Assembly: GCF_032444005.1 (NCBI RefSeq)
Contig: NC_091283.1
Coordinates: 29,450,001 to 29,514,000, forward strand
Direction of reading: 5' to 3'
Length of the DNA: 64,000 bases
From: Ranitomeya imitator
Lineage: Eukaryota
Position numbers and translations under genes: made by a program
Shown here: positions 6,001-61,402 of the stretch, piece after piece
How positions within the stretch are numbered: position 1 is the first letter of the stretch
How the letters are laid out: the number at the start of each line of letters is the position of its first letter
Notes under the pieces: model-generated
What the model saw: only the letters and a program-made list of their open reading frames with translations
Told to the model about the DNA's origin: nothing
The model's database searches: none

Positions 6001-7879
6001 ATACTACGTGACTGGGCACTATACTACGTGACTGGGCACTATACTACGTGGCTGGGCAATATACTACGTGACTGGGCAATATACTACGTGACTGGGCAAT
6101 ATACGTGACTGGGCAATATACTACGTGACTGAGCAATATATTACGTGGCTGGGCAATATACTACGTGGCTCTGCTATATACTACGTGGCTGGGCAATATA
6201 CTACGTGGCTGGGCAATATACTACGTGACTGGCCAATATACTACGTGGCTGGGCAATATACTACGTGGACATGCATATTCTAGAATACCCGATGCGTTAG
6301 AATCGGGCCACCATCTAGTAACTTTATAAAGGCTGAGTAATAATGAAATAATAATAAAAAAAAGTTTAGTTACTCTTTAATAGAGATGTGCAACCTCGAA
6401 CTCAAAACAAAAACTCTGAGCACAGATTTCTCCCGGATGTCCATTGCAATGTTTGGCGTTTCGGGGGAAGTCCGGAAAGGGAGAAGAAGAGAGAGATAGA
6501 GGGAGAGAATTTTCTAGCTCAAAAGTTCAGGCCCCCATTGTTTTCATTGGTTCTGGTTCCATTTTGGATACAGTTCTGGTTCCAACCTTTGGAATAAAGT
6601 TCGGGTTGGATACCAGAACCCAAACTTCCACAGGTCCGCTCATCCCTATTCTTTAGGCATGTTAATGAGATATTTTTAATTCTAAGTACAGTAGCTGCAA
6701 ACAATATACTGATAATGTTCCTTCCAGGTGGCGCTGGTTGCCCAAGATCCGGTTTTATTTGCTGGAACAATAAAAGACAACATCACTTACGGACTCATCA
6801 GCAAAAGCAACGAGCAAGTGACAGAGGCAGCAAGGAACGCGAAGGCGGAGAACTTCATCAGCAACCTGGAGCAGGGCTACGACACAAGTAAGTGATACAA
6901 GCATTACATTCCACAGCCGAGATAAAAGATTTGTATTTATATTTTATATACACTATCATTACGGTGCGCAGTGCATTACGTATGAATGCCTTCCTGATGC
7001 AGGACTTAATAGCACTCGCTACGTTGGGTCTCCATGTCTGCAGCAGGCTCTGTAGCTGCGTCATACAGCCAGCATCTGCCACTAACAACAGCGACCAGCT
7101 ACCTCTGATCTCTGCGGTTTAATTATTTACATGCTGCTGTCAATCACTGGTGACATTGTTACTTTCATAAAAGTCTAATTTATCAAAATAAAAAACAAAT
7201 GAACCCACAAAGAGAAAAAATATCAAAATGCCAGATGTTGTTTTTCATCCGTTACTCCATACACAGCACTGGCCACAAATCTAGAGGTCGGAAGGTGTCT
7301 CCTATCAGGAGGCCTCATGTACATTAGGTTCTCCCACTTTCTGGCAAAAAATCATCAGGTTTTTACCGTAACGGTTCTGTCCCCTATCTACATTATTGTG
7401 CAGCATTTTCACGTCTGACTCTTGTTTTGACTTTTTAATCAGATTATTCTTAGATTCTTTGATTTCCTGTTTCCACAGATGTTGGAGATAGCGGGGCTCA
7501 GATGGGGGCCGGGCAGAAGCAGCGCATCGCCCTCGCTCGGGCGCTCGCCCGGAAACCTAAGTTACTTATTCTGGATGAAGCTTCCAGTTGTCTGGATGTA
7601 GAAACGGAGCACGAGGTGCGGTACGACGCTGGCCGGATCGGGGGGCTGCGGTCTGTTACTGTCCAACATTAATATATGTGTCCTCCACAGATCCAGCAGT
7701 CTGTGCAGAATATCCCCGGCCTCTCCGTCCTGATCATCGCTCATCGGCTGCGCACGGTGCGAGAAGCGGACCAGATTCTAGTTCTGGACAGAGGTCGGGT
7801 GGTCGAGCGCGGAAATCACACAGAGCTGGTGAAGAACGAGGAGGGAGCTTACTATAAACTCCTGAAGAACGGCGACTGA
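1..7879 (+). CDS. TAP2: Antigen peptide transporter 2, copy A (5'-partial: exons 4-11)
   Basis: Exons with GT-AG boundaries: <1-72, 1093-1290, 1958-2086, 2323-2511, 3029-3202, 6728-6887, 7479-7615, 7691-7879 (TGA). Sizes 198/129/189/174/160/137 fit the TAP exon pattern and the frame is open throughout. Walker [11 protein letters not shown]-loop AQDPVLF, degenerate signature MGAGQ, Walker B LLILDE and H-loop IAHRL form the TAP2-type combination. Confidence 0.93.
4300..4450 (-). mobile_element. LINE (L2/CR1-clade) 3'-end fragment
   Basis: 'atttctatagcgccaacatattccgcagcactgtaca' resembles the reverse complement of amphibian/fish L2-type 3' ends; a similar piece occurs at ~48885-48925. Confidence 0.4.
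4595..6318 (+). mobile_element. Non-autonomous Helitron carrying a 20-bp minisatellite
   Basis: A|TC 5' end at 4594/4595; subterminal hairpin cccgat-N8-atcggg (6288-6307); CTAG|T 3' end at 6318/6319; no TSD. The same family occurs at 44465-47976. Confidence 0.8.
5343..6267 (+). repeat. 20-bp minisatellite (ctgggcaatatactacgtg[g/a])n inside the Helitron
   Basis: Directly visible tandem array of roughly 45 units. Confidence 0.97.
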
Positions 7880-8046
7880 ACCTAAAGCAGAGGAACATGG
7901 AGGAAATATTCTATAGACGTGGACGAAGTAACCCCACATAAATTATGTACATGTCCGAGACACGTGATGTAACAGTCACCGTCATCTCTTCCATCTTCTC
8001 CAGCTTTGCTCGTCCGCTCCTCCTAACCTGCTGCAGCTTTCCGTTA

Positions 8047-8815
8047 GGCCCCAGTTACACCAGTAGATAATCGTGTAAGGAAATAAACGATCTGATGTCA
8101 GGTAAGGATAATTGATAAGGTTCCATCACGTAATCGCGGCATCGACCATCGTTCACAGAAGCCATTGTCCCATGTGGAGCCGCCAGAGATGTAGCCCACG
8201 TGGACCTTCCTCCTGCCATCTCCTGGGGGTCTTTTGGCTTTTTTTTAACATACTCTACTGTCTGAGATGCGCAATGACTTTACCCCACTACGCCTCGTGG
8301 TTTTTTGTATTATAGATAGTGTGGGAAATTCAGGATTTCCTTGCGTAGACGTTTCACAAACTTCGGCAATAAACCCACATGCAGTATTCGATATTCCTCT
8401 GAATTTTTACATCACTCCTGGCCGACGATCATGCACGTGTCTCGGCAGGAGTGCCGGGTCGTAACTTTACTGGTGCCGATCACTTCCGATACAGAAGGAC
8501 GATCCCTCATTCATACACATGAATATTTGGCTTGACCGACTGTTTGTGTGTTTTCAATAGGGATAGGTGAGAAAATAACTATATACAATGCACTCGTATA
8601 ATGAGCCATTCACGTTGCACAGGGGCGGAACAATCGGTTATACGGCCATATTGTCCCCATACAATTGCAATAAATCGGCAGCACATGCTGTCTACATGCA
8701 TTACCGATGATTCACATGCCAACATAAAGGATTAGCGGCACGATGACACACATCCATGGTGTAGAGCAAGCTTTTTTATGAATGTTCTACAATTATCGGC
8801 CCGTGTGATTGGCCT
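8047..8815. mobile_element. Harbinger-like MITE immediately 3' of the TAP2A stop codon
   Basis: tta|ggcccca-gttacac at the left end and gtgtgattggcc|tag at the right form imperfect TIRs; contains AATAAA at 8082-8087. Confidence 0.4.
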
Positions 8816-10259
8816 AGAAAGGATTTTTTTTTTACTTAAATACTAAAAAATAATTTTTGCAAAATGTTGAACTGTTTGTTTTTCGGCACATTCAAGCTTT
8901 GATGAGGTCAGAAAAAGCAGGTACAAAAGTTAAAATCTTCCCCGTGAGATCGTAATAAGGGGCCGAATGACGGATTCTCAAATAACTTTTTGACGCCAGA
9001 GACTATAGAAGGTAGACGATGCTAAATGGTTAATTAAACCCAATTGCAAAAATAATTAATAGACCCAATTACATGCATTTAAGAAAAAAAAAATGTCCTC
9101 AAAGGAGAATCGCCACATTGTTCAGCAGAACAGAGAAATGGTGCAGGCAGCGATTCTTTGCACACAAACAGCTGGTATGTCTGAACCCAGCAATAAAGAA
9201 AAAAAATGTATGTCTGCATATTTATTTTTTAAAGGAGGAAAAAAAGTAAATTTTCACCTACATCCTGAGATCCAGGAGACATCGTTAATAATTGACTTTT
9301 GATCTCAATCTGTATTGTACTATTTCTGAATAGAACATCTGATATTTTTCTAGTATTAGACTTTTTCTTGGTTTTGCATTGCAGAAAATGTGACAAAAAT
9401 AAATAAAAAGTTTGAAAAAAGATTTGTGTTATTAATTATTTGGGTTATTTTTTTTATCTATATGGTGGAAATCTGTAAAAAAAATCAAATAAAACCCATC
9501 TTGTTTCATGTTTTTTTATGCCGGCAAAGAATTCTTCTTTTTTTTGTAATATATATATTTTTTAGATGTAATAGTGATACAAACAATATTTGTTTGTTAG
9601 GACCTTATTTATTTTTACAAAAGGGACATACCGGATCCAGGACAGATTGAGACTTAATCATTCAGAAATGAAACTAAATTCTGACGACCCCATATTTTTA
9701 CACCAGGATTAATCTGAATATCTGCCTTTTATAAAGGGATTGTCTCAACTTTTAATTAGGTAAAATTACTAAAACGTATTAAAAATCCTCTATTCCCTAG
9801 ACTGGAGGGATTTTTTATTTCAGTGTACTTCTCGTTGGCATAGTTACCGGCCACCTCTCATGGATCGCATTTAATCCTTGCAAGTGCAGCCCCGGAGCTT
9901 CCCAGATCACTAGATCCCGCCAACATCAGTGATCCTCTGCTAGAAGGGAGAGCGGTGCGCTCAGCGTTTCCGAACTGTCAATCATCATGAGCGCACCGAC
10001 CCCCTGACAGCAGGAAGTCGGGAGGCAGAGGAGCGCCGTGCTCCTGAAGAAAAATTATACAAACTTTCTAAATCTGAATAGGTCTAAAATGCGTAACTAT
10101 TGGGAGTTTTTATTTTTTAATTTTCCATTTTAAGATTTATATATCTTTTTATTTTTCTACCAATATTGATGTACGAGGAATTGTTTTTTTGGGGGCTTGT
10201 TTAGCTTAGCAAAAAGGTCTCCTCAAATCACATTTATATGTATAAATAAATGGTCAATA

Positions 10260-10460
10260 TTAAGAACGGGAACATGACTTATTCCTTACACAGGAAGAGG
10301 GGAAGATTGCAGAAGTTAAATAAAGGGTTCTTTACAGTTAGAGCAGTAAAAGTGTGGAATGCCGACCACAGGAGGTAGTAATGGCCGACACTATATCGGC
10401 TATATCTATGGGAGGGCCGGATGATTTTCCCATAACAAATGGCACTATGGGTTATAATCT
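10260..10460 (+). mobile_element. Decayed CR1 ORF2 3' fragment
   Basis: 'gggttctttacagttagagcagtaaaagtgtggaatgcc' matches the GFFTVRAV.xWN segment of the CR1 at 22380-22420. Confidence 0.55.
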
Positions 10461-10473
10461 AGTGATCAGGAAT

Positions 10474-11313
10474 GTACAGTATAACTGGTGAAGAAAAGGG
10501 AATTTTATGAACCCGTGTTTAAGCCAGAAACAGTAATTTCTCACTGGATACGGTACTGGATCACGGATGCAGGGTGTGGTCCGTCCGGCTTGGAAGCGAA
10601 TTGGAAATCCCTCTAACCAAGTGGGGTTGGAAGCCTTCCTTCTAGCGCTGTGGTGTTGTAGTCCCTTGCTGCCTTAGGCTTCACTCAAGGTCCTCACGTT
10701 TTCTCTCTGTCCCCCTTTAGGTAGGACACTACCCGTACAACAAGTAGCTTGAGCCTTTTTACAGGATCTCTATCACGACCCGGGCTCCATTTGCTACTGT
10801 GTCCTCGGGTGTTGATGGTGGAAGGTAACTTGCAATCAGCTGTCTGCCAGTTTCTGCCGTGGGGCATGAAGTTACCCCCACAACCTCGGTCTTCTGGCTA
10901 CCGGTATCTGCATTCAGCATGGAGCAAGCCCATTCTCAGCTTCTCTCTCCAGCTCTTCACTCTCCTGTGCTTCTTTTCCCTCTCAGTCTCCTACAGAATG
11001 CTCTGCTTTCTTTTTCCTTCCCAGGAGCCGCAGAATCACTCATCTCCACGGCCCCACCTCTCCTTCCTCTCTCCTCGCTCTCCTCTCACCAACTGTCTAA
11101 CTCCAACTGCCTAGCAACTGCCTCCTCCTCCCGACCTGAGAGAGCAGCCCCCTGAAGTCAGGTGTAGAGCTCCCCCTTCTGGCCTGGAGTCAGAGCAGTG
11201 TTGTATGTGCTGAATACCTGTCAAAGGGATCCTTCCTCGCTTCCAAGCGTGACATCACTCTCCCCATGAGGAAAGCAATGCAACTGTAACAACCGGTTAC
11301 CTGGGCTGTTACA
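10474..11313 (-). mobile_element. Probable solo LTR
   Basis: Minus strand begins TGTAACAGCCCAGGTAACCGG (TG start). The left boundary is uncertain. Confidence 0.35.
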
Positions 11314-11439
11314 GATGCACATCAATGACATGCGTCGGTATGAGGTGATGACGTGAGGCCTATTGCTGCTTTATGTGAAAATCGGCCGAGAAATGACAGG
11401 AGGGCAAGCGAAGGACCCAGCTGGGAGCTACAGAAAAAA

Positions 11440-11775
11440 GACAGGTGAGAGGCAGGAGTAGGGCAACTGAGTACAAGACAGGTGAGACACAGGAATAGGG
11501 CAACTGAGTACAAGACAGATGAGACACAGGAGTAGGGAAGGTGAGTACAAGACAGGTGAGACACAGGAATAGGGCATGTTAGTACAAGACAGATGAGACA
11601 CAGGAATAGGGCAGGTGAGTATAAGACAGGTGAGACACAGGAATAGGGAAGGTGAGTACAAGACAGGTGAGACACAGGAATAGGGCAGATGAATACAAGA
11701 CAGATGAGACATAGGAATAGGGCAGGTAAGTATAAAACAGGTGAGACACAGGAGTAGGGCAGGTGAGTACAAGCT
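11440..11775. repeat. 37-bp minisatellite (gagtacaagacaggtgagacacaggaatagggca...)
   Basis: Period 37 (gtacaagaca at 11471 and 11508), about 9 units. Confidence 0.9.
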
Positions 11776-12096
11776 TTTATTACTTTTTAACCCCTTGCGT
11801 TTGTCTATTATGTGCTGGCGTCTGGAGAGACCTAAGCACATGATAAATGTCCTATAAGACAATTAATTTTAATTTAAGTCAAATCCTCCTGAAAATAATT
11901 TTCCTCTCCATTCCATACAATAAATGTAATGGGTCCTTAAAGGCACTGTCACCTGAATTTGGAGGGAACAATCTTCAGGCATAGGGGCGGGGTTTTCGGG
12001 TGTTTGATTCACCCTTTCCTTACCCGCTGGCTGCAATATTGGATTGAAGTTCATTCTCTGTCCTCCATAGTACACGCCTGCGCAGGGCAAGATTGC

Positions 12097-12728
12097 AGCA
12101 GCACCTGAGGAGCTTGGGGCATGTTAGAGTCCCTGTAAAAAGGCTCAAGCTGCCCGTCGTGCAGGTACCTGTCCCAGGACAGGGGGAAACTGGAGGACCC
12201 TGTAGGAAGCTTCAGGCAGGAGACCTCACCTTTAATGGCGCTAGTTGGAAAGGCTCACGGACCTCTACTGGAACAGGAGAGCTCTCACTTGCCTCTGAGC
12301 CGGCCGGACCACCATCATCCATGCCTGGTACCCTGGACTGTGGCCAGCAACCTGCAGTAAACCAGGTAAAGACTTACAACTTGTCTCCTCTCATTTATTC
12401 ACCGGCTTTACCATCTACGCCACACACCATAGGACCCCTGGGGACCCCGCTTCACCTGTGTAAGTGTAACATCTGGGCTGCAGCAACATCCCCCAGGGGA
12501 CCCCTTTAATGCAGCGTCGGTCCAGCTACTGACTGAACTCCACAGGTGGCATCACGACAAACTTTGAACATTTAACCCCCTGTAACATTGTTGCCCAGGG
12601 CCACGGACCGGGTCACAACCACCGTGACAACCCCCCTTACGACAGGATCCGGTACCGAGTATCCCACTGCCCTGTGGGCGCGTCAGGGATAAATATAAAA
12701 CAGTACCAGATCCACAGAGATAACTACA
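12097..12728 (-). mobile_element. Solo-LTR-like insert inside a TTAA-target MITE
   Basis: Flanked by a 4-bp TTGC duplication (12093-12096 / 12729-12732); the minus strand starts TGTAGT. It interrupts an element that begins ttaa|aggcactgtcacc at ~11937. Confidence 0.45.
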
Positions 12729-13459
12729 TTGCGCGGTCACTGCTGCTCTGCCTCCTTATAGCAGCCACCTCAGAAGAGCCTTTCACTAAACTTTGAAGAC
12801 AATATCTGCCTAGTAACAGATGATGAGTATAACTGACTGCAATTCTATTGGTTGCAGCATCTAACATTGTCATTACCCAGAGACTTATCATATAATGTGT
12901 AGGGGAAGCAGGCGCAGTATGTGTGAGCATGCGCAGAATAGGGGGGGACAGGCGCAGTATATACTTTTATATACCTTGATGTTTTCTAGAATACATTTGG
13001 GGATATAATATGTGCATGCAATTCATCCATGACTCTACAGTCAGACGGACCCCAGTGATGAGTTTATAGGGGATAACTTACAAACTTGGCACAAGCCTTT
13101 TTAATAACAATGAGGTACCGGAGGGCAGAAAGGAACCAGGAGATTATTACCACAGTGTGGACTTAGAAATGCGCCCTAATGGCGGAGGAGGGAAGAGTCA
13201 GCTCTCTGCTCCACCATTTGATCACAGCAGGCACAATGATATCACTACACCGTTTCAGCTGTGGGAGGAGCATACAACACAGACTACAGCAGCTTATCAT
13301 GGGAAGGGGAATAAGTGCATCGGGGCATGTCAATGCACTTGAAATACAAAGACCATGTGGATTGACACGCCCCCAGTGCACTTCCAGCCTGATCTGCATA
13401 TGGCATTGAATCTATGCAAAAAAAAAAAAATCCAAACGTATGATGGTGCTGAAACATTT

Positions 13460-14328
13460 AGGGTATGTGCACACGATTCGGAAAACGCAGCAGTTTCCCA
13501 TTAGTTTGCATTGCAATGTAAACCTATGGGAAACAAAAAACGCTGTGCACATGCTGCAGAAAATAACGTGTGGAAACGCAGCGGTCTACATTCCGCAGCA
13601 TGTCACTTCTTTCTGCGGATTCCGCAGCGGTTTTACAGCTGCTCCTATAGAAAACCGCAGTTGTAAAGCCGCAGTGAAATCCGCTGTAAATCCACGATAA
13701 ATCTGCAGCAAAAACACAGCGTTTTTGCCCTGCAGATTTATCAGATCCGCTGCGGAAAAATCCACAGTGGACCATTATACATGTGCACATAGCCTTAGGA
13801 ATCCTTCGCTCATTCGCCTTTTTCATGTTAACAAATATAATAAATAATAATTGTGTTTTTTTATTCTGTAACATTATATAGAAGCATCTTCCCTGTTCTT
13901 TGTTAAATCCTCTAAAATAGCCAGTGAACATGTAAAAAAACCCAACATGTTAACAACAGGGTATGTGCACACGTTGCGGATTCTCTGCGGATCCGCAGCT
14001 TTTTTTGCGGTGCAGAAACGCTGCAGATCCACAATTGATTTACAGTACAATGTAAATCAATGAGAAAAAAAAATGCTGTGCACACTTTGCGGAAAATCCG
14101 CTGCAGAAACGCTGCAGTTTAAAAGAAGTAGCATGTCACTTCTTTTTTGTGAATCTGCAGCGTTTTTGTACCCATTCCATTATAGAAAACTGCAGCAAAA
14201 ACGCACAAAAAACGCTGCGGACCCACACAAAAAAAATGCAACAAATCCACAGGTGCGTTTTCTGCCAGGAGAGGTAGAATCCGCACCAGAAATTCCTAAG
14301 CCTAATCCGCAACGTGTGCACATAGCCT
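13460..14328. mobile_element. Two PIF/Harbinger-type MITEs in tandem (~13460-13795 and ~13960-14326)
   Basis: TIRs GGGTATGTGCACAC / GTGTGCACATAGCC with TWA flanks. The second element shares its TTA flank with the next MITE at 14330. Confidence 0.7.
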
Positions 14329-14329
14329 T

Positions 14330-15896
14330 AGGGTACCGTCACACTATACCATTTAGATCGCTACGACGGTACGATTCGTGACGTTCCAGCGATATCGTTA
14401 CGATATCGCTGTGTCTGACACGCAGCAGCGATCAGGGATCCTGCTGAGAATCGTACGTCGTAGCAGATCGTATGGAACTTTCTTTCATCGCTGGATCTCC
14501 CGCTGTTATCGCTAGATCGGTGTGTGTGACACCGATCTAGCGATGCGATCCAGCGATGCGTTTGCTTGTAACCAGGGTAAACATCGGGTAACTAAGCGCA
14601 GGGCCGCGCTTAGTTACCCGATGTTTACCCTGGTTACAAGCGTAAAACTAAAAAACAAACAAACAGCACATACTTACATTCTGGTGTCCGTCAGGTCCCT
14701 TGCAGTCTGCTTCCCGCACTGTGACTGCCGGCCATAAAGTGAAAGCAGAGCACAGCGGTGACGTGCTTTCACTTTCACTTTACGGCCGGCAGTCACAGTG
14801 CGGGAAGCAGACTGCAAGGGACCTGACGGACACCAGATGTAAGTATGTGCTGTTTGTTTTTTTTTAGTTTTACGCTTGTAACCAGGGTAAACATCGGGTA
14901 ACTAATCGCGGCCCTGCGCTTAGTTACCCGATGTTTACCCTGGTTACCCAGGGACCTCGGCATCGTTGGTCGCTGGAGAGCTGTCTGTGTGACAGCTCCC
15001 CAGCGACCACACTACGATTTACCTACGATCACGGCCAGGTCATATCGCTGGTCGTGATCGTAGGTAAATCGTATAGTGTGACGGTACCATTGGAGTCCTT
15101 GGTCATGAAAGGGTAACGGAGCTAAGGATACCGTCACACTATACGATTTACCTACGATCACGACCAGCGATATGACCTGGCCGTGATCGTAGGTAAATCG
15201 TAGTGTGGTCGCTGGGGAGCTGTCACACAGACAGCTCTCCAGCGACCAACGATGCCGAGGTCCCTGGGTAACCAGGGTAAACATCGGGTAACTAAGCGCA
15301 GGACCGCGCTTAGTTACCCGATGTTTACCCTGGTTACAAGCGTTAAACTAAAAAAAAACAAACAGCACATACTTACATTCTGGTGTCCGTCAGGTCCCTT
15401 GCAGTCTCTGCTTCCCGCACTGTGACTGCCGGCCGTAAAGTGAAAGTGAAAGCACAGCCGCTGTGCTCTGCTTTCACTTTACGGCCGGCAGTCACAGTGC
15501 GGGAAGCAGAGACTGCAAGGGACCTGACGGACACCAGAATGTAAGTATGGGCTGTTTGTTTTTTTTTAGTTTAACGCTTGTAACCAGGGTAAACATCGGG
15601 TAACTAAGCGCGGTCCTGCGCTTAGTTACCCGATGTTTACCCTGGTTACAAGCGAACGCATCGCTGGATCGCATCGCTAGATCGCTAGATCGGTGTCACA
15701 CACACCGATCTAGCGATGACAGCGGGAGATCCAGCGATGAAAGAAAGTTCTAAACGATCTGCTACAACGTACGATTCTCAGCAGGATCCCTGATCGCTGC
15801 TGCGTGTCAGACACAGCGATATCGTAACGATATCGCTGGAACGTCACGAATCGTACCGTCGTAGCGATCGAAATGGTATAGTGTGACGGTACCCTA
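14330..15896. mobile_element. Inverted dimer of a ~765-bp Harbinger-type MITE (14330-15088 and 15126-15896)
   Basis: TIR GGGTACCGTCACACTATA. Copy 2 is the near-exact reverse complement of copy 1; copy 2 has a TAA...TAA TSD and copy 1 has TTA...TTG; ~37-nt spacer. Confidence 0.85.
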
Positions 15897-16278
15897 AGTA
15901 AATTACTGCGAACCATGAAGTAAACCTAGTTATGAAAAGGCCTTTGAGCTGAGTCAAATCCTTCTCATCCAGCCAACCAGCACCCTCCTCTACTGACAAG
16001 ATGGGTCTCTGGCTTAGCTACAGACAGGTTCCTGGCTTAGATACAAATGGGTTTGTGGTTTAGCTACAAATCCGTTTCTTGTTTGGCCAATATCCTTAGT
16101 CATGTTGCAAGGCTCGTTAAAGGGTCAGATGACTTGTAGAATAGCAATCTCCAATAGTTAATACAAGAGTGTGAGAGAAAAAAAGCTATGGAGAACTCTT
16201 GCACTTTGCCTTTACAGTAGTTTTGGTAACTTTTGATTGTGACTGCCCTTCACAATTAAGGTAAAAAATAATACAAAA

Positions 16279-16927
16279 TGTCACGAAGTGACTGTCCTAG
16301 CGTGACCAGACGAGCGGTCATAAATCAGCGAAACACGCAAGGGTACATCGGGGACACTAACAACGGTGGGCTCTGTCGGTAGGGATCGGGGGAATGGACA
16401 CCTCCTGCACTCACCTGAGGATGTGCCCTGATCTTACTATCGTCCTTATACGGGTACTTTCACCCCATCGCCGGGCAGGATACCTAATCCCTCGCTTGCC
16501 CTGCTCTAATCCCTAGGTAGGGAGCTGGCAGGTGAGAACACTGGTCCCACTGCTGCACTAATACAACACAGGGGAAGATACAGAGGGACAAAGCAACAAA
16601 GCTTTCTCTGCTGCAATGCACCGCACATGGAGTAAAGCACCAGATACCAGTATTCAGCTGAAGAACCACTGAACCAGCAACCTCCAGTGTTCAGCACAGT
16701 TGGTACTCAAAAGGACCTGTATAACCAACAGTCAGCTGATGCATCAGGTGACCTTTTAAAGGAAGGTGGGTGTGGTCACCACCCACATCAGGAGACTAGG
16801 CAGCAATGTAATTATACCAGAGGCCACCAAGGGGAGGAAAAGCTGCATTAACCCCTGATAACCTGAAAGGAAAAAAAAATAATTTGAGAGGCCAGATCTG
16901 TCACAGATCTAAACATGGATTGTGACA
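16279..16927. mobile_element. Probable solo LTR
   Basis: TGTCAC...GTGACA terminal inverted hexamer, ~650 bp; TSD not clean (caaaa / caagg). Confidence 0.5.
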
Positions 16928-17889
16928 CAAGGACTGAATATTGGCCCAGGTGGCTCATGTACTCTAGACCGTAGGTTCTCAACCCTTCAGGTAGATGACA
17001 TGTCTCTAAGTGGAATCTATGCTGCCCAGTGTCAGATCATAACTTCAGAGGTATGTAATTTGTTTCAGTAGGAACATTGAGAAACACAAATCCAGATTAC
17101 GTGGGCCTCACGATTTATACTACTCAGCCTGCAGCATTTCTCCATCATCTGGAGGAAGGGTGGATGGCGTGAAACTAGAGACATGGCACGGGTCCACCAC
17201 ATTGGCCTTCAAGTTTCAGCATGGAGTGATTGTGGCGGTGGATTCCCGTGCGTCGGCAGGACAGTATATTGGTGAGTGGTTGCTAAATACCTTTTACATT
17301 AGAACTTAATTTCCAAGTGATTTAGTACTAGCCATGGGTGACCGATTACTTCCATAAAATGATTCCCATGCATCATTTTCCCCACAGCTACACTGAAGGT
17401 TAACAAAGTGATTGAGATAAACCCGTATCTGCTGGGCACCATGTCCAGGAGTGTGGCAGACTGTCAGTACTGGGAACGGCTTCTCGCCAAGGAGTGCAGG
17501 TGTGTTATATAATACCGATAACTGCATATTAGTGAGTATGATTATGGAACGATCGTTTGCTCAATGACACTGTCCAATAAATCAAAAACCTTTATTTCCA
17601 TTTCCTTACTCATATTTGTAAGAGCTTCTTTCCTAAGAAAGATTTTAGGAAGTTTGGGCCTAACAGTGCAGATTCCCTTCTCAAAGCGGCACTGAGAACG
17701 ACACAACACTGTCTCTGGACCAGTGACAAACTTTACTCATTCTCGAGGACCAATCACTGGAATAAAGCCTTAACATCTCAGCCTCTGGTTACATGTGCAG
17801 AAGCCACACTCTGTTCTTCACCCTCAGGTCCACACCTAGACGGTCTTGCACAATGTCCGGTCTCAACACGCATCAGTCACATTTCACTT

Positions 17890-18704
17890 AGGGTATGCGC
17901 ACACGCTGCTGATTTTGCTGTGGATTCGCAGTGGATTTCACGCTGCGGATTCGTAGCAGTTTCCCATGCGTTGTACAGTACCATGTAAACCTATGGAAAA
18001 CCAAATCCGCAGTGCACATGCTGCAGAAAAAAACGCCCTGAAACGTAGCATTATTTATTCCGCAGCATGTCAATTCTTTGTGAGGATTCCACAGCGTTTT
18101 AGGCTGTGTGCACACGATGCAGATTTGGTGCAGAATTTTCTGCATAAAATCTGCACTAAATCTGCATCTCCTGGCAGAATCCGCAGGTGCGTTTTTTATG
18201 CGTTTTTTGTGCATTTTTGATGCGTTTTTGATGCGTTTTTTGTGCACAAATCTGCACAAAAAAACACATCAAAAACGCATCAAAAACGCACAAAAAACGC
18301 ATAAAAAACGCACCTGCGGATTTCTATTATGGAGGGGTGCAGAAACGCTGCAGAACTGCACAAAAGAAGTGACATGCACTTCTTTGAAATCTGCAGCGTT
18401 TCTGCGCAGATTTTTCTGCACCATGTGCACAGCTTTTTTTTTTCACGTTGATTTACATTGTACTGTGATCACAGTGCAGTTCTGCAGCGTTTCTGCTGCA
18501 GAAAAATCTGCTGCAGTTCTGCACTAAATCTGCATCGTGTGCACATACCCTTACACCTGCTCCTCAACAGGAATCCGCAGGTGTAAAACCACAGGTGGAA
18601 TCCGCACAAAAACCGCGGTAAATCCGCAGTGCGGTTTACCTGCGGATTTTCCAAAATCAGTCAGGAAAAATCCGCAGAATAATCTGCAGCGTGTGCACAT
18701 ACCC
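17890..18704. mobile_element. Harbinger-type MITE with a second related MITE (18102-18549) nested inside
   Basis: Outer TIR tta|GGGTATGCGCACAC...GTGTGCACATACCC|tta; inner tta|GGCTGTGTGCACAC...GTGTGCACATACCC|tta. Confidence 0.75.
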
Positions 18705-20449
18705 TTACACCTCAGGCCTTTGTCTCCTGCAGTGACACATTATTCACTCACAGTACAAGCGCTCTCGGATCTTGACTCCGCACCCCTGGCCAGCTTTTCA
18801 GATGATAGTCACTTGCCTCGCTCTTGGTGTCAACACCTCTCAGGTGTCTTGTCAACCTTGCTGGAACACCACAATATGCTTAGACTTTCTCCGGCTTTCA
18901 CTCACTATGGTTGGGCAACACTCTTTACTTTTTTGTTACCGCTTACAGATTCATCTGCCAGGGGCATTCACAGAGGTAACTTAGCCATGGGCAGCACACT
19001 GTATCTGATTAATCTACCTGTCCCTAACAGCTTGCCTTTTTTGCCTCATCACATTCAGCCATTATTGTTACTTTGAGAAATAATTTGAGAATTTTGTTCA
19101 CTTCATTTCGGAATGTGTTTAAAAATTAATTTGCAATTTACTGATCATTGTATGGTTACCAAATTTTTAGCTTATTCCCACCTTCATCTTTCATGGTGGA
19201 AATAACTCCATCCAGGCTTTAACCACAGGTGGTGGGGCTACAGAAGTGGCTACCCTGTGGTCATAGGTCCCATTCATTTCTATAGCCGATCTCAGCTGTT
19301 TTTGGAAATCCATCTCCAGTGGTCGATGCCTGGATGGAGTTATTGCAGCCATAAATGGTTGAGGTGGGAATAAACCATTCATTTTTTATTGTGTTTATTT
19401 TACACATTTTGTGTCCTAATTTTATTATTCAGCATTTTTTTAACACTTCATTAGGACGTTGTAATATATTGAAATGAGTCTAGCTATGTTCGTATCTGCA
19501 CCGGAGACTTGCAGATTCCAGATTTGATAGGAGATACAGAACTGTCAAAATTACTGACCCAATGTTGGGGCAAAAGAGATCCCACTATAAGTCAATGGGG
19601 TCCTTTGTGTGCTGGAGGTTTCCTTTGACTGTTTTGGCTTTCATTATAGACAGAAGCCGCAACGCACATGTGAATAGAGGATATGTACATTTTACCTAAT
19701 ATCCACACATTCCTCTTTATATCAGGTTATACCAGCTGCGGAATAATTCCCGGATCACGGTGTCGGCAGCTTCCAAACTCCTATGTAACATGATGCTTGA
19801 GTACAGAGGTACAGGACTGAGCGTGGGCAGCATGATCTGTGGCTGGGATGAGAAGGTAATAGGCTTGGAACGATGATTAGGCTGCAGAATTGCTTCATTA
19901 CCAGTTGGCAAATGAACCAGAATTTGCAGGAGACAGAATTTAACATTACACGTCTTTCTCATGTCCCTAAATGTCCAACCGTGGTGCTCAAAAACCTCAT
20001 AGAGTGCTGTGTTCAGACTATCGGTATTTCTCTGAAGCGATTGGTATTAAATTATGGTTAAAATATACTAGACACAGCAATTTTCTTTCATGATTTCCTG
20101 AATATTCAAGAAAGCAACAGTGCGGTTCTGCCTTTCTTAGGATATCTGTGGGTGCAGAATTGTTCTGCATCTAAATGAAAAATGATAATTTTCCATCTCG
20201 ATTTTTTATTTTCGTTTATTACTGTGAGAGTAATAACCAAACAGCTCAAAATGTGCAAAGTACAATTATGACATTTCTATTAAAACCTCAGTCACCAATA
20301 TAGTAATATGGCCGTCCTTCTTCTCAATAACAATCAATAGCTCCATCCATGGAGTCTGTGGACGATCAACTTTTTGGGTAGAACCAACCACAGCCCCATA
20401 CACTTATCAGGGAGGTAACTGTTCTGCTTCACTGTTACAACACCTCCCA

Positions 20450-23400
20450 TAATACTGACGATGAGGAGCGATGGTGTGTTCCATACATAATACTGACGAT
20501 GAGGAGTGACGGTGTGTTCTACACATAATACTGACGATGAGGAGCGATGGTGTGTTCTACACATAATACTGATGATGAGGAGCGATGGTGTGTTCTGTAC
20601 ATATTACTGACGATGAGGAGCGATGGTGTGTTCTATACATAATACTGACGATGAGGAGCGATGGTGTGTTCTACGCATAATACTGACAATGAGGAGCGAT
20701 GGTGTGTTCTACACATAATACTGACAATGAGGAGTGATGGTGTGTTCTATACATAATACTGACGATGAGGAGCGATGGTGTGTTCTATACATAATACTGA
20801 CGATGAGGAGCGATGGTGTGTTCTATACATAATACTGACGAGGAGTGACGGTGTGTTCTACACATAATACTGACAATGAGGAGCGATGGTGTGTTCTATA
20901 CATAATACTGATGATGAGGAGCGATGGTGTGTTCTATATATAATACTGACAATGAGGAGCGATGGTGTGTTCTATACATAATACTGACAATGAGGAGCGA
21001 TGGTGTGTTCTACACATAATACTGACGATGAGGAGTGATGGTGTGTTCTATACATAATACTGACGATGAGGAGCGATGGTGTGTTCTGCACATAATACTG
21101 ACAATGAGGAGTGATGGTGTGTTCTATACATAATACTGACGATGAGGAGCGATGGTGTGTTCTGCACATAATACTGACGATGAGGAGTGATGGTGTGTTC
21201 TGCCCATAATACTAACAATGAGGAGTGATGGTGTGTTCTACACATAATACTGATGATGAGGAGCGATGGTGTGTTCTATATATAATACTGACGATGAGGA
21301 GCAATGGTGTGTTCTGTACATAATACTGACAATGAGGAGCGATGGTGTGTTCTGTACATAATACTGACAATGAGGAGCGATGGTGTGTTCTATATATAAT
21401 ACTGACGATGAGGAGTGTCAGTATTAGACGTGGTATATCTCGATTTTTCCAAAGCGTTTGATACCGTGCCGCACAAGAGGTTGGTACACAAAATGAGAAT
21501 GCTTGGTCTGGGGGAAAATGTGTGTAAATGGGTTAGTAACTGGCTTAGTGATAGAAAGCAGAGGGTGGTTATAAATGGTATAGTCTCTAACTGGGTCGCT
21601 GTGACCAGTGGGGTACCGCAGGGGTCAGTATTGGGACCTGTTCTCTTCAACATATTCATTAATGATCTGGTAGAAGGTTTACACAGTAAAATATCGATAT
21701 TTGCAGATGATACAAAACTATGTAAAGCAGTTAATACAAGAGAAGATAGTATTCTGCTACAGATGGATCTGGATAAGTTGGAAACTTGGGCTGAAAGGTG
21801 GCAGATGAGGTTTAACAATGATAAATGTAAGGTTATACACATGGGAAGAGGGAATCAATATCACCATTACACACTGAACGGGAAACCACTGGGTAAATCT
21901 GACAGGGAGAAGGACTTGGGGATCCTAGTTAATGATAAACTTACCTGGAGCAGCCAGTGCCAGGCAGCAGCTGCCAAGGCAAACAGGATCATGGGGTGCA
22001 TTAAAAGAGGTCTGGATACACATGATGAGAGCATTATACTGCCTCTGTACAAATCCCTAGTTAGACCGCACATGGAGTACTGTGTCCAGTTTTGGGCACC
22101 GGTGCTCAGGAAGGATATAATGGAACTAGAGAGAGTACAAAGGAGGGCAACAAAATTAATAAAGGGGATGGGAGAACTACAATACCCAGATAGATTAGCG
22201 AAATTAGGATTATTTAGTCTAGAAAAAAGACGACTGAGGGGCGATCTAATAACCATGTATAAGTATATAAGGGGACAATACAAATATCTCGCTGAGGATC
22301 TGTTTATACCAAGGAAGGTGACGGGCACAAGGGGGCATTCTTTGCGTCTGGAGGAGAGAAGGTTTTTCCACCAACATAGAAGAGGATTCTTTACTGTTAG
22401 GGCAGTGAGAATCTGGAATTGCTTGCCTGAGGAGGTGGTGATGGCGAACTCAGTCGAGGGGTTCAAGAGAGGCCTGGATGTCTTCCTGGAGCAGAACAAT
22501 ATTGTATCATACAATTATTAGGTTCTGTAGAAGGACGTAGATCTGGGTATTTATTATGATGGAATATAGGCTGAACTGGATGGACAAATGTCTTTTTTCG
22601 GCCTTACTAACTATGTTACTATGTTACTATGAGTGATGGTGTGTTCTGTACATAATACTGACGATGAGGAGCGATGGTGTGTTCTATATATAATACTGAC
22701 GATGAGGAGTGATGGTGTGTTCTGTACATAATACTGACAATGAGGAGCGATGGTGTGTTCTATATATAATACTGACGATGAGGAGCAATGGTGTGTTCTG
22801 TACATAATACTGACAATGAGGAGCGATGGTGTGTTCTATATATAATACTGACGATGAGGAGTGATGGTGTGTTCTGTACATAATACTGACGATGAGGAGC
22901 GATGGTGTGTTCTATACATAATACTGACGATGAGGAGTGATGGTGTGTTCTACACATAATACTGACAATGAGGAGTGATGGTGTGTTCTGCACATAATAC
23001 TGACAATGAGGAGCGATGGTGTGTTCTATACATAATACTGACGATGAGGAGTGATGGTGTGTTCTATACATAATGCTGACAATGAGGAGCGATGGTGTGT
23101 TCTGTACATAATACTGACGATGAGGAGCGATGGTGTGTTCTATACATAATACTGATGATGAGGAGCGATGGTGTGTTCTACACATAATACTGACGATGAG
23201 GAGTGACGGTGTGTTCTATACATAATACTGATGATGAGGAGTGACGGTGTGTTCTATACATAATACTGACAATGAGGAGCGATGGTGTGTTCTGTACATA
23301 ATACTGACGATGAGGAGTGATGGTGTGTTCTACACATAATACTGACGATGAGGAGCGATGGTGTGTTCTGCAGATAATACTGACGATGAGGAGCGATGGT

Positions 23401-24050
23401 GTGTTCTGTACATAATACTGACGATGAGGAGCGATGGTGTGTTCTACACATAATACTGACAATGAGGAGTGATGGTGTGTTCTGCACATAATACTGACAA
23501 TGAGGAGCGATGGTGTGTTCTACACATAATACTGACAATGAGGAGCAATAGTGTGTTCTATACATATTACTGACGATGAGGAGCGATGGTGTGTTCTATA
23601 CATAATGCTGACGATGTGGAGCGATGGTGTGTTCTGCAGATAATACTGACGATGAGGAGCGATGGTGTGTTCTACACATAATACTGACGATGAGGAGTGA
23701 CCGTGTGTTCTGCACATAATACTGACAATGAGGAGCAATAGTGTGTTCTATACATAATACTGACGATGAGGAGCGATGGTGTGTTCTATACATAATGCTG
23801 ACAATGTGGAGCGATGATGTGTTCTACACATAATACTGACGATGAGGAGTGACGGTGTGTTCTGCACATAATACTGACGATGAGGAGTGACGGTGTGTTC
23901 TATACATAATACTGATGATGAGGAGTGACGGTGTGTTCTACACATAATACTGACAATAAGGAGCGACGGCGTGTTCTATACATAATACTGACAATGATGA
24001 GCAGCGGTGTGTTCTGTACATAATAATGACGATGAGGAGCGGCGCTGTGT
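20450..24050. repeat. 38-bp minisatellite (cataatactgacgatgaggagcgatggtgtgttctata)n in PSMB8 intron 4, split by a CR1
   Basis: Direct tandem array on both sides of 21418-22630. Confidence 0.97.
21418..22630 (+). mobile_element. 5'-truncated CR1 LINE (RT C-terminus, uninterrupted ORF 21415-22521)
   Basis: YLDFSKAFDTVPH, GVPQGSVLGP and FADDTKL RT motifs; (ATGTTACT)n 8-bp 3' tail; GAGTG target duplication (21413-21417 / 22631-22635). Confidence 0.95.
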
Positions 24051-24554
24051 TTTGTGCATAATACCAAACATTAGAACCATTTACATTCTGTTTAACCTAC
24101 AGGGCCCTGGTTTATATTACGTGGATGAAAATGGGACAAGACTCTCCAATGACATGTTCTCCACCGGATCAGGAAGTTCCTTTGCTTATGGAGTTATGGA
24201 TAGTGGATACCGCAAAGATCTGACCCCTGAAGAGGCGTATGACCTGGGCCGCAGAGCTATCAGTTATGCCGCACACCGTGACAATTATTCCGGAGGGGTG
24301 GTGAATAGTAAGTACCTCTGCTACTGTCTGCAGATATAAAACCATAGCTCATATATAATAGGCATGTTTACTGAATATATATTTTTTCCACATTATATTT
24401 CTTCTCTTTACAAATATTTTTAGCTCCGCCAGGGTAACAGGAACTCAAGACCGCTTTTTTTGTGATTGTGGAAGAACATCATCTCCACATTTCTTGACTT
24501 TGTTGTTGACCTATTGGCCAATTAGCCATTTACATTCAGTTAGAAGGTGCAGAG

Positions 24555-26950
24555 GCGGTAAAGAGAAAGATCTGCCTACTAGATGGTGCAGCGGCGGTAA
24601 AGAGAAAGCTCTGCCTACTAGATGGTGCAGCGGCGGTGTTGCAAAAGCTCTGCCCACTAGACGGGGCAGCAGCGGTGTTGAGAAAGCTCTGCCCACTAGA
24701 CGGGGCAGCAGCAGTGTTGAGAAAGCTCTGCCCACAAGACGATGCAGAGAAAGCTCTGCCATCTAGAGGGCGCAGCAGTGGTGCGGAGGAAGCTCTTCCC
24801 ACTAGGCGATGGTGCGAAGGAAGCTCTGTCCATTAATCGGGCAGCAGAGGTGCGGATGAAGCTCTGCCCATTAGTCGGGCAGCAGAGGTGCGGATGAAGC
24901 TTTGCCCATTAGTCGGGCAGCAGAGGTGCAGGTGAAGCTCTGCCCATTAGTCAGGGCAGCAGAGGAGTGGATGAAGCTGTGCCCATTAGTCGGGCAGCAG
25001 AGGTGCGGATGAAGCTCTGCCCATTAGTCGGGCAGCAGAGGTGCGGATGAAGCTGTGCCCATTAGTCGGGCAGCAGAGGTGCGGATGAAGCTCTGCCCAT
25101 TAGGCGGGACTGCAGAGGTGCGGATGAAGCTCTGCCCATTAGTCGGGACTGCAGAGGTGCGGATGAAGCTCTGCCCATTAGGCGGGACTGCAGAGGTGCG
25201 GATGAAGCTCTGCCCATTAGTCGGGCAGCAGAGGTGCGGATGAAGCTCTGCCCATTAGTCGGGCAGCAGAGGTGCGGATGAAGCTCTGCCCATTAGTCGG
25301 GCAGCAGAGGTGCGGATGAAGCTCTGCCCATTAGTCGGGGCAGCAGAGGAGTGGATGAAGCTGTGCCCATTAGTCGGGCAACAGAGGTGCGGATGAAGCT
25401 CTGCCCATTAGTTGGGGCAGCAGAGGTGCGGATGAAGCTCTGCCCATTAGTCGGGCAGCAGAGGTGCGGATGAAGCTCTGCCCATTAGTCGGGCAGCAGA
25501 GGTGCGGATGAAGCTCTGCCCATTAGTCGGGGCAGCAGAGGAGTGGATGAAGCTGTGCCCATTAGTCGGGCAACAGAGGTGCGGATGAAGCTCTGCCCAT
25601 TAGTTGGGGCAGCAGAGGTGCGGATGAAGCTCTGCCCATTAGGCGGGACTGCAGAGGTGCGGATGAAGCTCTGCCCATTAGTGGGGCAGCAGAGGTACGG
25701 ATGAAGCTCTGCCCATTAGTCGGGGCAGCAGAGGTACGGATGAAGCTCTGCCCATTAGTCGGGGCAGCAGAGGTGCGGATGAAGCTCTGCCCATTAGGCG
25801 GGACTGCAGAGGTGCGGATGAAGCTCTGCCCATTAGTCGGGGCAGCAGAGGTGCGGATGAAGCTCTGCCCATTACTTGGGGCAGCAGAGGTTAGGATGAA
25901 GCTCTGCCCATTAGTCGGGGCAGCAGAGGTACGGATGAAGCTCTGCCCATTAGTCGAGCAGCAGAGGTGCGGATGAAGCTCTGCCCATTAGTCGGGGCAG
26001 CAGAGGTGCGGATGAAGCTCTGCCCATTAGGCGGGACTGCAGAGGTGCGGATGAAGCTGTGCCCATTATTCGGGGCAGCAGAGGTGCGGATGAAGCTCTG
26101 CCCATTAGGCGGGACTGCAGAGGTGAGGATGAAGCTCTGCCCATTAGTCGGGCAGCAGAGGTGCAGATGAAGCTCTGCCCATTAGTCGGGCAGCAGAGGT
26201 TAGGATGAAGCTCTGCCCATTAGTCGGGGCAGCAGAGGTGAGGATGAAGCTCTGCCCATTAGTCGGGCAGCAGAGATGCGGATGAAGCTCTGCCCATTAG
26301 TCGGGGCAGCAGAGGTGAGGATGAAGCTCTGCCCATTAGTCGGGGCAGCAGAGGTGCGGATGAAGCTCTGCCCAAAAGTCGGGCAGCAGAGATGCGGATG
26401 AAGCTCTGCCCATTAGTCGGGGCAGCAGAGGTGAGGATGAAGCTCTGCCCATTAGTTGGGAAGCAGAGGTGCGGATGAAGCTCTGCCCATTAGTCGGGGC
26501 AGCAGAGGTGAGGATGAAGCTCTGCCCATTAGGCGGGACTGCAGAGGTGCGGATGAAACTCTGCCCATTAGTCGGGGCAGCAGAGGTTAGGATGAAGCTC
26601 TGCCCATTAGTTGGGGGAGCAGAGGTGCGGATGAAGCTCTGCCCATTAGTCGGGCAGCAGAGGTGCGGATGAAGCTCTGCCCATTAGTTGGGGCAGCAGA
26701 GATGCGGATGAAGCTCTGCCCATTAGGCGGGACTGCAGAGGTGCGGATGAAGCTCTGCCCATTAGTCGGGCAGCAGAGATGCGGATGAAGCTCTGCCCAT
26801 TAGGCGGGACTGCAGAGGTGCGGATGAAGCTCTGCCCATTAGTCGGGGCAGCAGAGGTTAGGATGAAGCTCTGCCCATTAGTTGGGGGAGCAGAGGTGCG
26901 GATGAAGCTCTGCCCATTAGTCGGGGCAGCAGAGGTGCGGATGAATCTCT
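24555..26950. repeat. 38/39-bp minisatellite (gatgaagctctgcccattagtcgg[g]gcagcagaggtgcg)n in PSMB8 intron 5
   Basis: Direct tandem array; each unit contains the inverted pair ctgccc...gggcag; units are more degenerate at the 5' edge. Confidence 0.97.
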
Positions 26951-27794
26951 GCACATTAGGCGGGCAATGGCTGCACGATTTTGAAACAAAATTGTGTAGC
27001 AAAAGGCCATCACAGTGGAAGGTGTTTCTGTTGATTCTACGCTTAAAGGGACTTTCTTCTCTTCATTTACAGTTAAAATAGTTGTGCTAAGTATGAAGTT
27101 ATCCACTATACAAGGAACTTCCTGGTTGTTGGGGGTCCAGATACTGGGACCCCCATTGATTCTGAGAATGCTGTGCTTGGATATTTCCGTCAGTCTCATA
27201 GTGAAAGAATGGAGCAGGGGTGCGCACACTCAACCTCCGCTACATTTACACCTAATTCTTAAGAGCCACAGTCATGGGATCGATGGGGGTCATACTTACC
27301 AGAGTAATGCACCCCCTCGCTCCAGAGCTGCCGCTGTGACGGTCTACCACTCGCGCCCACCACTGACCTTCCCGCGGAGGCCACTGATTGGCTGCAGGGT
27401 AAGGTAACTGGTGTCTGAGATGTCACTATTTCCTGTCTGTCCGGCGGAGACCATCAGAGTGCCAGCGTCGGAGCAGACCGGTAAGTACGGCTTCTTTATC
27501 TCTTTTACAAGCATGGCTTCCCTCTGTTAACTTTATAAAGAGAGCAAACCCCTTTTATTAATTTCATGACATCGATTAAACGTTTGCCTGGTCTGTGTCT
27601 CCTCAGTGTACCACATGAAGGAGGACGGATGGGTGAAAGTCGGGCAGTACGATGTCAGCGACCTGCTGTACGAGTACAAGGAGGAGAAGAAGTGACGGCA
27701 GAGACTGAGCCCAGCGACGAAGACTCCATTATCGTCTCCAACATTTCTCCATTTTTCGTTATCACAACAAACCTGCGAATGTCAATCCCCCAAA

Positions 27795-27800
27795 AATAAA
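27795..27800 (+). terminator. PSMB8 polyadenylation signal AATAAA
   Basis: First AATAAA, 100 nt after the TGA. Confidence 0.65.
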
Positions 27801-28477: not shown

Positions 28478-31400
28478 TCATTCCTTGGTGTCTCCGTTCT
28501 CCCGGTGGAAAGTGCTGTGCTGCTTCTTCCAGAGTCTCCAGTAGACGCCCTCCTGGGCCAGTAAATGTTCATGTCTGCCGGACTCTCTGATCTGACCTCC
28601 TTCCAGAACCAGAATGTGGTCGGCTTTCTCCACGACGTTCAGGCGGTGGGATATCAGCAGTACCGTACGTTTGTTTGGGTTGTCATAAATGGTTCTTTGT
28701 ATCTGGACAGAAAAGTCACAGCACAGAATTACATAAGGACAGTCCGCGCCTCCTCACAGGGGAACACATGAGTGAAAATCTGCTGTACAAAAGCATAGAT
28801 GGAGAATCGAGCAGCACCAGAGGGGACCAGGATGGGTGCGATTCCCACACCAGTCTATTATGTATGTGTGAGTAACAATGAGATAATCGCTGATCGTCGC
28901 GCCTTCCAGCTATTTGGTGCGGCTACTAGTTACAGTCTCCTCGTGGCCAGCATGGCTACTCAGCGTCAGGTCACACGCTCCCTCCATCAAAGCTGAGTGG
29001 GTGTTACGGCAGTGAGGAGACCCTGTCTAGTCCCCACTGCAGCATCGTCACAGAGATAACTACAAGGAGCGGCGCACAGCAATCTGTAAGTCACTTTTCT
29101 CATTCATACATTCATTCATATTTTCATGGAAAACCAGTAATGTATGGAACATGTCGTATGGCGCAATGCTCAGCGGCACAACTGGGGAAACGCTGTGAAC
29201 ATTGCAGCATTATCCTATCGGTTTACTCACCTTGAGTTCACTTTCAGAGTCCAGGGAGCTGCTGACATCATCCAGTATAAGGACCTTGGGATCCCTCACC
29301 AGGGCCCGCGCTAACGCCACTCTTTGTTTCTGACCCCCAGACAAAAGGGCGCCTTTTTGTCCAGCACCTAAAATACAGCACATGACTATTATCTCCACAC
29401 ACGAGTCATTCATTTATTGCTGCGAGAATACAAGACCGTCCTTCAGAGTGTGCAAAGCGCGCAGCCGCACAGAGAACATCAGCCACACAGAGAACATCAG
29501 CCACACAGAGAACATCAGCCACACAGAGAACATCAGCCGTACAGAGAACATCAGCCGCACAGAGAACATCAGCCGTACAGAGCACATCAGCCACAGAGAG
29601 AACATCAGCCACGCAGAGCACATCAGCCACACAGAGCACATCAGCCACACAGAGCACATCAGCCGTACAGGGAACATCAGCCGTACAGAGAACATCAGCC
29701 ATACAGAGAACATCAGCCAAATAAGACACATCAGCCACACAGAGAACATCAGCCACACAGAGAACATCAGCCACAGAGAGAACATCAGCCACACAGAGAA
29801 CATCAGCCGTACAGAGAACATCAGCCAAATAAGACACATCAGCCACACAGAGAACATCAGCCACACAGAGAACATCAGCCACACAGAGCACATCAGCCGT
29901 ACAGAGAACATCAGCCGTACAGAGAACATCAGCCGCACAGAGAACATCAGCCACAGAGAGAACATCAGCCACACAGAGCACATCAGCCACACAGAGCACA
30001 TCAGCCGTACAGAGCACATCAGCCGCACAGAGAACATCAGCCATACAGAGAACATCAGCCAAATAAGACACATCAGCCACACAGAGAACATCAGCCACGC
30101 AGAGCACATCAGCCGCACAGAGCACATCAGCCGAGCAGAGCACATCAGCCGCACAGAGAATATCAGCCACGCTGAGCACATCAGCCACGCAGAGAACATC
30201 AGCCGCACAGAGAACATCAGCCACGCAGAGCACATCAGCCACGCAGAGCACATCAACCGCACAGAGAACATCAGCCGCACAGAGCACATCAGCCACGCAG
30301 AGTACATCAGCCGCACAGAGAACATCAGCCACGCTGAGCACATCAGCCACGCAGAGAACATCAGCCACACAGAGAACATCAGCCACGCAGAGAACATCAG
30401 CCGCACAGAGAACATCAGTCACGCAGAGCACATCAACCGCACAGAGAACATAGGCCGCAGAGAGAACATCAACCACACAGAGAACATCAGCCGCACAGAG
30501 AACATCAGCCGCACAGAGCACATCAGCCACGCAGAGCACATCAACCGCACAGAGAACATCAGCCACACAGAGAACATCAGCCACACAGAGAACACCAGCA
30601 GTACAGAGCACATCAGCCAAGTAAGACACATCAGCCACACAGAGAACATCAGCCAAATAATACACATCAGCCGCACAGAGAACATCAGGAGCACAGAGAA
30701 CATCAGCCATACAAAGAAATCAGCCGCACAGAACACATCAGTCGTTCCTATGTGACCCCTATATGACCACCATGCATTGTAATGCAGACTGTATAGCGGT
30801 ATTATTCACATACCGTATAGAACTATTATTATATGGAGCAGTTTCGGTCACTGCAGGTATCTGAGCACTGTATGGGGGAATAGACACTGTATATCTCCTG
30901 TGCTGTACAATATATTATTCCTGCAATGTATGGTGGTGGCGGCACTATAGAGTTTATATATAGTTGAGGCATTTTCCTCACATTGTTATTATGCTCATGT
31001 ATGGCACTAGTATGTAGGCACTAAACATTACACCAAATAGGGTAATAACAGAAACTACAACCCAGGGCAGAATGTAATAACCCTTGTGTGACCAGACGCT
31101 TCCATCACGCCTCGTATATCATCTGTCCTACACCCACCTGTCTTGTACCCGTCCACCATGGTGGAAATAAAATCATGTGCGTTTGCTGCGGCTGCCGCGT
31201 TCTCCACGGACGACTGAGAAACGTGTCCCAAACCGTAAGAGATATTGTCATCTAATGGCCGGGCAGTGAGGACGGGCTCCTGACTCACCACGGACACCTG
31301 CAATGAAGGAAGCGAGGTAGGACAGAGGACAGTGACCACGTGAGACGCCACCAGCGGCACATGATGATGATGATGGAGTCCGCTTCCAGTCTCACTGCTC

Positions 31401-32146: not shown

Positions 32147-32186
<40 letters not shown>

Positions 32187-37363: not shown

Positions 37364-37420
<57 letters not shown>

Positions 37421-61365: not shown

Positions 61366-61402
<37 letters not shown>

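Follow-up and report, generated by a model that had tools for sequence, protein, structure and literature searches.

Copies of proteasome genes with altered catalytic residues raise the question of whether such a gene is simply dead or encodes a subunit that has been silenced and put to a new use. The PSMB8 (beta5i) copy described here lies in a 64,000-nucleotide stretch of the genome of Ranitomeya imitator (GCF_032444005.1, contig NC_091283.1, positions 29,450,001 to 29,514,000 of the forward strand), referred to below as the window, which contains no N stretches and consists of vertebrate DNA in which introns are large and both minisatellites and transposons occur. The original prediction offered two readings of this copy, a young pseudogene or a catalytically silenced beta5i that dampens chymotrypsin-like cleavage. 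In this work, we conclude that the copy is probably a pseudogene or null allele of the Val31 form of PSMB8 that is young and unprocessed, lacks its 5' end and has a frameshift, located in a tandem TAP2-PSMB8-TAP1 cassette of the hyloid frog MHC. Beta5-type subunits require a propeptide and a start codon in order to be made and incorporated.

Sequences compared

Exons of the PSMB8 copy were searched one at a time. In addition, the region 16000-19950 was compared with four public runs labelled with one organism, one of which is DNA-like (X1) and three of which are RNA-like (X9, X18 and X19), all of them originating from other studies and not from the source of the assembly. The comparison employed Logan contigs, not raw reads, so that rare variants are dropped, and the sampled animals may lack the haplotype of the window. 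The assembly is the sole source of the deletion and the substitutions reported below.

Gene structure

The PSMB8 remnant is an intron-bearing gene of five exons on the forward strand at 17128-27695. Exon A (17128-17271, +) encodes the end of the propeptide and mature residues 1-27, with the Ser1 codon TCC at 17193-17195, and exon B (17388-17499, +) encodes mature residues 27/28-64, including Val31 (GTT, 17399-17401), Lys33, Arg47 (AGG, 17447-17449) and Val49 (GTG, 17453-17455). Exon C (19726-19855, +) follows with residues 64-107, exon D (24103-24307, +) carries the GSG and RD..SGG active-site motifs intact and has no window-specific changes at conserved sites, and exon E (27607-27695, +), the last coding exon, ends with the stop codon TGA at 27693-27695, with AATAAA at 27795-27800. 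The Pfam profile PF00227 matches exons A-D, that is, four of the five exon translations, with exons A and D singly above the score cut-off (E 3.8e-17 for exon D). The best matches among solved structures are beta5i chains, not beta5, and identity to anuran PSMB8 ranges from 75 to 100% per exon.

Canonical AG/GT splice sites are present at all five exons, and the four introns between them are retained. The joint 17499 to 19726 was seen in contigs of the three RNA-like runs, as was the joint 17269/71 to 17388. Read in the frame of Ser1, the mature part (exons A-E) is open. The original prediction had described exons 3-6 as otherwise open with intact splice sites; the splice sites stand, but the exon carrying Ser1 contains a 1-bp deletion and a TGA.

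Among database proteins, the nearest is an F-type PSMB8 from Anomaloglossus baeobatrachus (P0173), whose mature part has the same exon structure. The protein encoded by exon C is identical (100%), and identities of 64/68 and 35/37 were found for exons D and A, respectively. The two genes share Asp17, Lys33, GSG and RD..SGG as well as a TAP1-like gene located downstream in tail-to-tail orientation. Unlike P0173, the window copy lacks exons 1-2, has a frameshift in the propeptide and carries Ser1, Arg47, Val49 and Thr(-4); the specificity position 31 is Val (the small-residue type) in the window copy and Phe in P0173.

In a separate observation, the entry P0001 (Aquarana catesbeiana, hypothetical protein AB205_0136210) is a PSMB8 model in which the Thr1 exon is read in the wrong frame and the next exon is skipped; this may reflect an artefact of annotation or, alternatively, a further broken copy in a ranid.

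Substitutions at the active site

Translation of 17169-17270 gives VKLETWHG followed by the mature part, with HG|STT at the junction and thus Ser at position 1, and exon B reads MSRSVAD, which the alignment to solved beta5i chains places as Arg at position 47 and Val at position 49. The three substitutions named in the original prediction (Thr1 to Ser, Gly47 to Arg, Ala49 to Val) are therefore present in the assembled sequence as the letters TCC, AGG and GTG, and the same alignment agrees with its statement that Asp17 and Lys33 are kept. The copy also retains GSG and RD..SGG (AVDSR, VNKV and STGSGSS are all present). The amide of Gly47 forms the oxyanion hole, and this residue is strictly conserved (PMC4792962); position 49 is one of the six residues of the S1 pocket (PMC12983459).

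Among vertebrate PSMB8 cluster representatives, Thr1 is found in all 139 that could be scored at this position, and Gly47 together with Ala49 in all 131 scorable at those positions, so the copy deviates at each of the three, and neither Ser1 nor Arg47 nor Val49 is shared by any scorable fetched vertebrate PSMB8 (139 at position 1; 131 at 47/49). When compared with 24 anuran PSMB8 proteins, the copy differs at 4 of 101 invariant columns, namely Pro-4, Thr1, Gly47 and Ala49. In a leave-one-out control, the anuran proteins themselves typically showed 0-1 such changes (median 1), mostly conservative.

Frameshift and missing 5' end

At 17158-17160, a G run has lost one base: the window reads GGG, whereas contigs of all four runs read GGGG, the extra G falling behind 17157. 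Tblastn with 29 amphibian PSMB8 proteins places residues 44-55 at 17125-17160 and residues 56-92 at 17160-17270 in another frame, and every amphibian PSMB8 tested changes frame at 17160. The proper upstream frame of exon A ends at a TGA at 17170-17172, seven codons ahead of residue 1, and the frame of the mature protein contains no ATG between the stop codon at 17040-17042 and Ser1.

PSMB8 residues 1-43 and the start codon have no match in the window: when the N-termini of ten anuran PSMB8 proteins were searched against all six frames, the best tblastn hit had an E value of 0.15, that is, at chance level. The RNA-like contigs begin to fit the window at 17125, and further upstream they contain an exon ending in ..NTELMVPPGC, as in the conserved anuran propeptide. 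This upstream exon was not found in the window with 30-mer and 14-mer patterns (up to 3 mismatches), blastn-short or tblastn (E <=100). An ATG-led frame at 16989-17051, with GT immediately behind it, was assessed as a possible replacement for the first exon and rejected, given that its phase does not fit, it resembles no PSMB8 N-terminus and no contig joins it to the gene.

The stretch that separates TAP2 from the first remaining PSMB8 exon (8000-17127, +) holds no trace of PSMB8 codons 1-43. TAP2 lies on the same strand with its last exons near 7500-7900, so that about 9 kb contain no PSMB8 exon; by comparison, P0173, an intact gene, measures 9.45 kb in total, and the 10 kb upstream of it are free of called genes. 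Only 388 bases of the 9 kb upstream of exon A recur elsewhere in the window, and the contig depth of the segments 16000-16131 and 16264-16923 indicates that they occur in many copies across the genome. Given the same-strand TAP2 directly upstream, it is unlikely that the 5' exons are to be found beyond the window. With no start codon and a frameshifted propeptide, the copy would be unable to make a beta5i precursor.

An intact relative in public runs

Contigs of all four runs that cross the three sites have A at 17193, G at 17447 and C at 17454, corresponding to ACC, GGG and GCG, and no contig among these runs, three of them RNA-like, carries TCC, AGG or GTG at the three codons. The original prediction had proposed that reads with ACC, GGG and GCG would remove the observation; precisely these letters are seen, but in other samples, where they belong to an intact relative or allele, and the letters of the window stay confirmed in the assembly. 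The run contigs thus represent such a relative or allele; they show neither that the window is misassembled nor that its PSMB8 copy is silent.

The exon sequences of X1 depart from those of the window at seven points (the extra G, 17181, 17193, 17447, 17454, 17464 and 19768), all of which are common to the form expressed in X9, X18 and X19, which has a few more. Since this more distant expressed form shares the seven differences, the states of the window are derived on its own lineage. Contigs of X9, X18 and X19 reach a depth of 350-1500 and skip 17272-17387 and 17500-19725, as expected of spliced PSMB8 mRNA. An intact Val31-type PSMB8, approximately 96-97% identical in the compared exons, is therefore expressed at high levels, with correct splicing, in other samples labelled as the same organism; it is either an allele of the same locus or the next tandem copy. 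The transcript-derived protein P0164 was excluded as the form expressed in the runs by too many differences, and no protein encoded by the window was found among the PSMB8 matches in a collection of 5.8 billion proteins.

None of the indexed runs has exactly the haplotype of the window. The best run, X1, contains half of the sampled words of the window, and the absence of the other half is expected at a real divergence of about 2.6%. In unique introns, X1 and the window differ by substitution at about 48 of about 1850 bases and show few indels. This divergence is patchy, amounting to about 1-2% with patches near 9%, as in the case of the 15 differences within 171 bases at 19572-19742, beside stretches of about 1%.

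Decay versus selection

Over exons A-C, the window differs from X1 by 4 nonsynonymous changes (Pro-4Thr, Thr1Ser, Gly47Arg and Ala49Val) and 2 synonymous ones, for 290 and 88 sites, respectively. The resulting pN/pS is 0.61, a value that comes from small counts; if omega were 0.1, the probability of 4 or more nonsynonymous changes would be 0.005. The 7 exon differences, in about 310 bases, have the same density as those of the neighboring introns (about 2.6% vs X1). Three of the substitutions, at 17447 (Gly47Arg), 17454 (Ala49Val) and 19768 (silent), are transitions from CpG to CpA or TpG, and the CpGs of Gly47Arg and Ala49Val lie 7 bases apart; in a methylated, unconstrained copy, such sites are the expected first casualties.

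According to the original prediction, the clustering of the changes on the active site looked non-random, an argument that is weakened by the two CpG transitions and by the intron-like density of differences. That Thr1 and Gly47 should both be struck by four nonsynonymous changes is still an unlikely coincidence, with a rough post-hoc estimate of about 0.002. Changes at invariant columns are confined to the 5' part of the remnant, at 4/41 columns in exons A-B and 0/60 in exons C-E (Fisher p 0.025). That exons C-E are undamaged points to inactivation in the very recent past, to chance or to a 3' half renewed by gene conversion.

Genomic neighborhood

The window begins with part of a TAP2 gene (1-3426, +; Walker A at 3074-3097), which recurs at 59245-62703 with 92% identity and thereby reveals that the region is duplicated in tandem, the period being about 59.2 kb; both TAP2 copies keep the Walker motif. 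The presence of introns with AG/GT boundaries and the location of the PSMB8 copy inside this 59.2-kb tandem repeat are as expected of an unprocessed (duplicative) pseudogene.

On the opposite strand, a TAP1-like ABC transporter gene (28481-43577, -) lies tail to tail with the PSMB8 copy, in the same arrangement as beside the intact P0173. TAP1 contributes to a degenerate ATP site. The TAP1-like gene (38598-38822 and 29213-29413, -) has a Walker motif with Asp where ABCB transporters have Gly, and its D-loop region reads DDVSSSLD in place of the usual DDATSALD pattern; these changes could be normal for frog TAP1, with its degenerate ATP site, or a sign of decay of the whole cassette.

A PSMB8 intron holds a 38-bp minisatellite of about 63 copies (20448-24064, +), in two blocks split by a LINE fragment with an open 369-aa reverse-transcriptase (RVT_1) frame at 21412-22518, and the last PSMB8 intron holds a 39-bp minisatellite of about 62 copies (24541-26966, +). 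An 18-bp array of 71 copies occupies a TAP1 intron (29462-30741). The span of TAP1 also includes an open 366-aa frame for a Tc1/Sleeping-Beauty-type transposase (34075-35172, -) with the domains HTH_SB, HTH_Tnp_Tc3_2 and DDE_3, and this element may be young.

Alternative explanations

The young-pseudogene reading is borne out by the frameshift and the stop codon, the missing exons 1-2 and ATG, the changes at four invariant sites, a pN/pS of about 0.6 and the lack of a transcript contig with the letters of the window. Under this scenario, no beta5i precursor would be made, and early neutral decay following inactivation would have produced Thr1Ser, Gly47Arg, Ala49Val and Pro(-4)Thr, two of which would be ordinary CpG deamination transitions. 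It is unlikely that the seven differences are instead artefacts of assembly or consensus calling at a locus that is in fact an intact, expressed Val31-type PSMB8, even though all contigs of the four runs read the canonical letters plus the extra G and a base missing from a G run is a classic long-read error. Six clustered substitutions that include two transversions are atypical of consensus error, the similar divergence of the introns in X1 makes the exon differences look like divergence between haplotypes or paralogues, the words of the window that are absent from X1 are about as many as real divergence predicts, and an error of this kind would not explain the loss of exons 1-2. The pseudogene reading also has a variant, in which a functional tandem copy recently replaced exons C-E of an older pseudogene by gene conversion; it is of similarly low probability, if not slightly lower. 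It would account for the restriction of the damage to exons A-B and for the patchy divergence of X1, and the cassette is tandemly duplicated at 92% identity, but the numbers are small.

The least probable of these explanations is an expressed decoy, in which a compensating upstream exon would allow the copy to be built into 20S particles and to lower chymotrypsin-like cleavage. The open mature part with its canonical splice sites and polyadenylation signal and the lack of damage in exons C-E agree with such a role, as does the fact that, among its four unique changes, three affect the catalytic centre or the S1 pocket, to which position 49 belongs (PMC12983459). However, the Ser1 frame offers no ATG between the stop codon at 17040-17042 and Ser1, the window yielded no PSMB8-like 5' exon, no transcript contig carries the letters of the window, pN/pS is near neutral, two of the three changes are transitions at CpG hot spots, and none of the three residues recurs in any fetched PSMB8. 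A silenced beta5i that dampens cleavage, as envisaged in the original prediction, is difficult to reconcile with a copy that has neither an in-frame propeptide nor a start codon. Its premise that Thr1Ser impairs autoprocessing and catalysis was also too strong: the engineered yeast beta5-T1S subunit is processed, the cells are viable and 55-60% of the chymotrypsin-like activity is kept, so this substitution by itself does not silence beta5 (PMC4792962). The yeast mutant has the same nucleophile substitution but is a complete subunit, whereas the frog copy would not be translatable as a precursor.

Discussion

Duplicated and apparently silent PSMB8 sequences have a precedent in amphibians. In salamanders of the genus Triturus, a probably non-transcribed PSMB8 sequence, possibly a pseudogene, has been described together with recent duplications of antigen-processing genes and a dimorphism of PSMB8 lineages (PMC7883663). 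The frog pseudogene resembles this case in that an amphibian has duplicated MHC-linked PSMB8 lineages, one copy of which is apparently unexpressed, with birth-and-death turnover. The Triturus case was established by resequencing and transcriptomes, whereas in the frog the lesions are read directly in a genomic copy with duplicated TAP2 and TAP1 neighbors.

A second comparison is provided by the A-type/F-type dimorphism of PSMB8, in which the two types are alleles in Xenopus and alleles or paralogues in fishes (PMC12983459 and works cited therein). The frog data are similar in the apparent coexistence of Val31 and Phe31 forms within one species and in that positions 31 and 49 are part of one S1 pocket. 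Unlike the types of Xenopus and fishes, the frog forms may lie in cis as tandem copies, with the Val31 copy on the assembled haplotype apparently dead. We tentatively suggest, as a possibility that we consider rather doubtful, that Val31 and Phe31 PSMB8 genes occupy tandem TAP2-PSMB8-TAP1 cassettes in cis and that haplotypes differ in which copy is live, such that the assembled haplotype keeps the F-type with a dead Val31 copy and other animals express an intact Val31 gene. If this is true, the classically 'allelic' A/F dimorphism would be maintained here among paralogues, each linked to its own TAP genes, through polymorphism in the presence or absence of function.

An MHC-linked PSMB8 pseudogene is a new instance of the familiar birth-and-death process. 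As a warning for similar cases, a striking cluster of changes at an active site can amount to nothing more than CpG decay of a dead gene, and for annotation the PSMB8 copy of the window should not be counted as a functional beta5i. The copy can serve as a marker for the haplotype distribution of TAP2-PSMB8-TAP1 cassettes and of the two specificity types of PSMB8 in hyloid frogs, and this distribution is relevant to the hypothesis of co-evolution between MHC class I and the genes for antigen processing.
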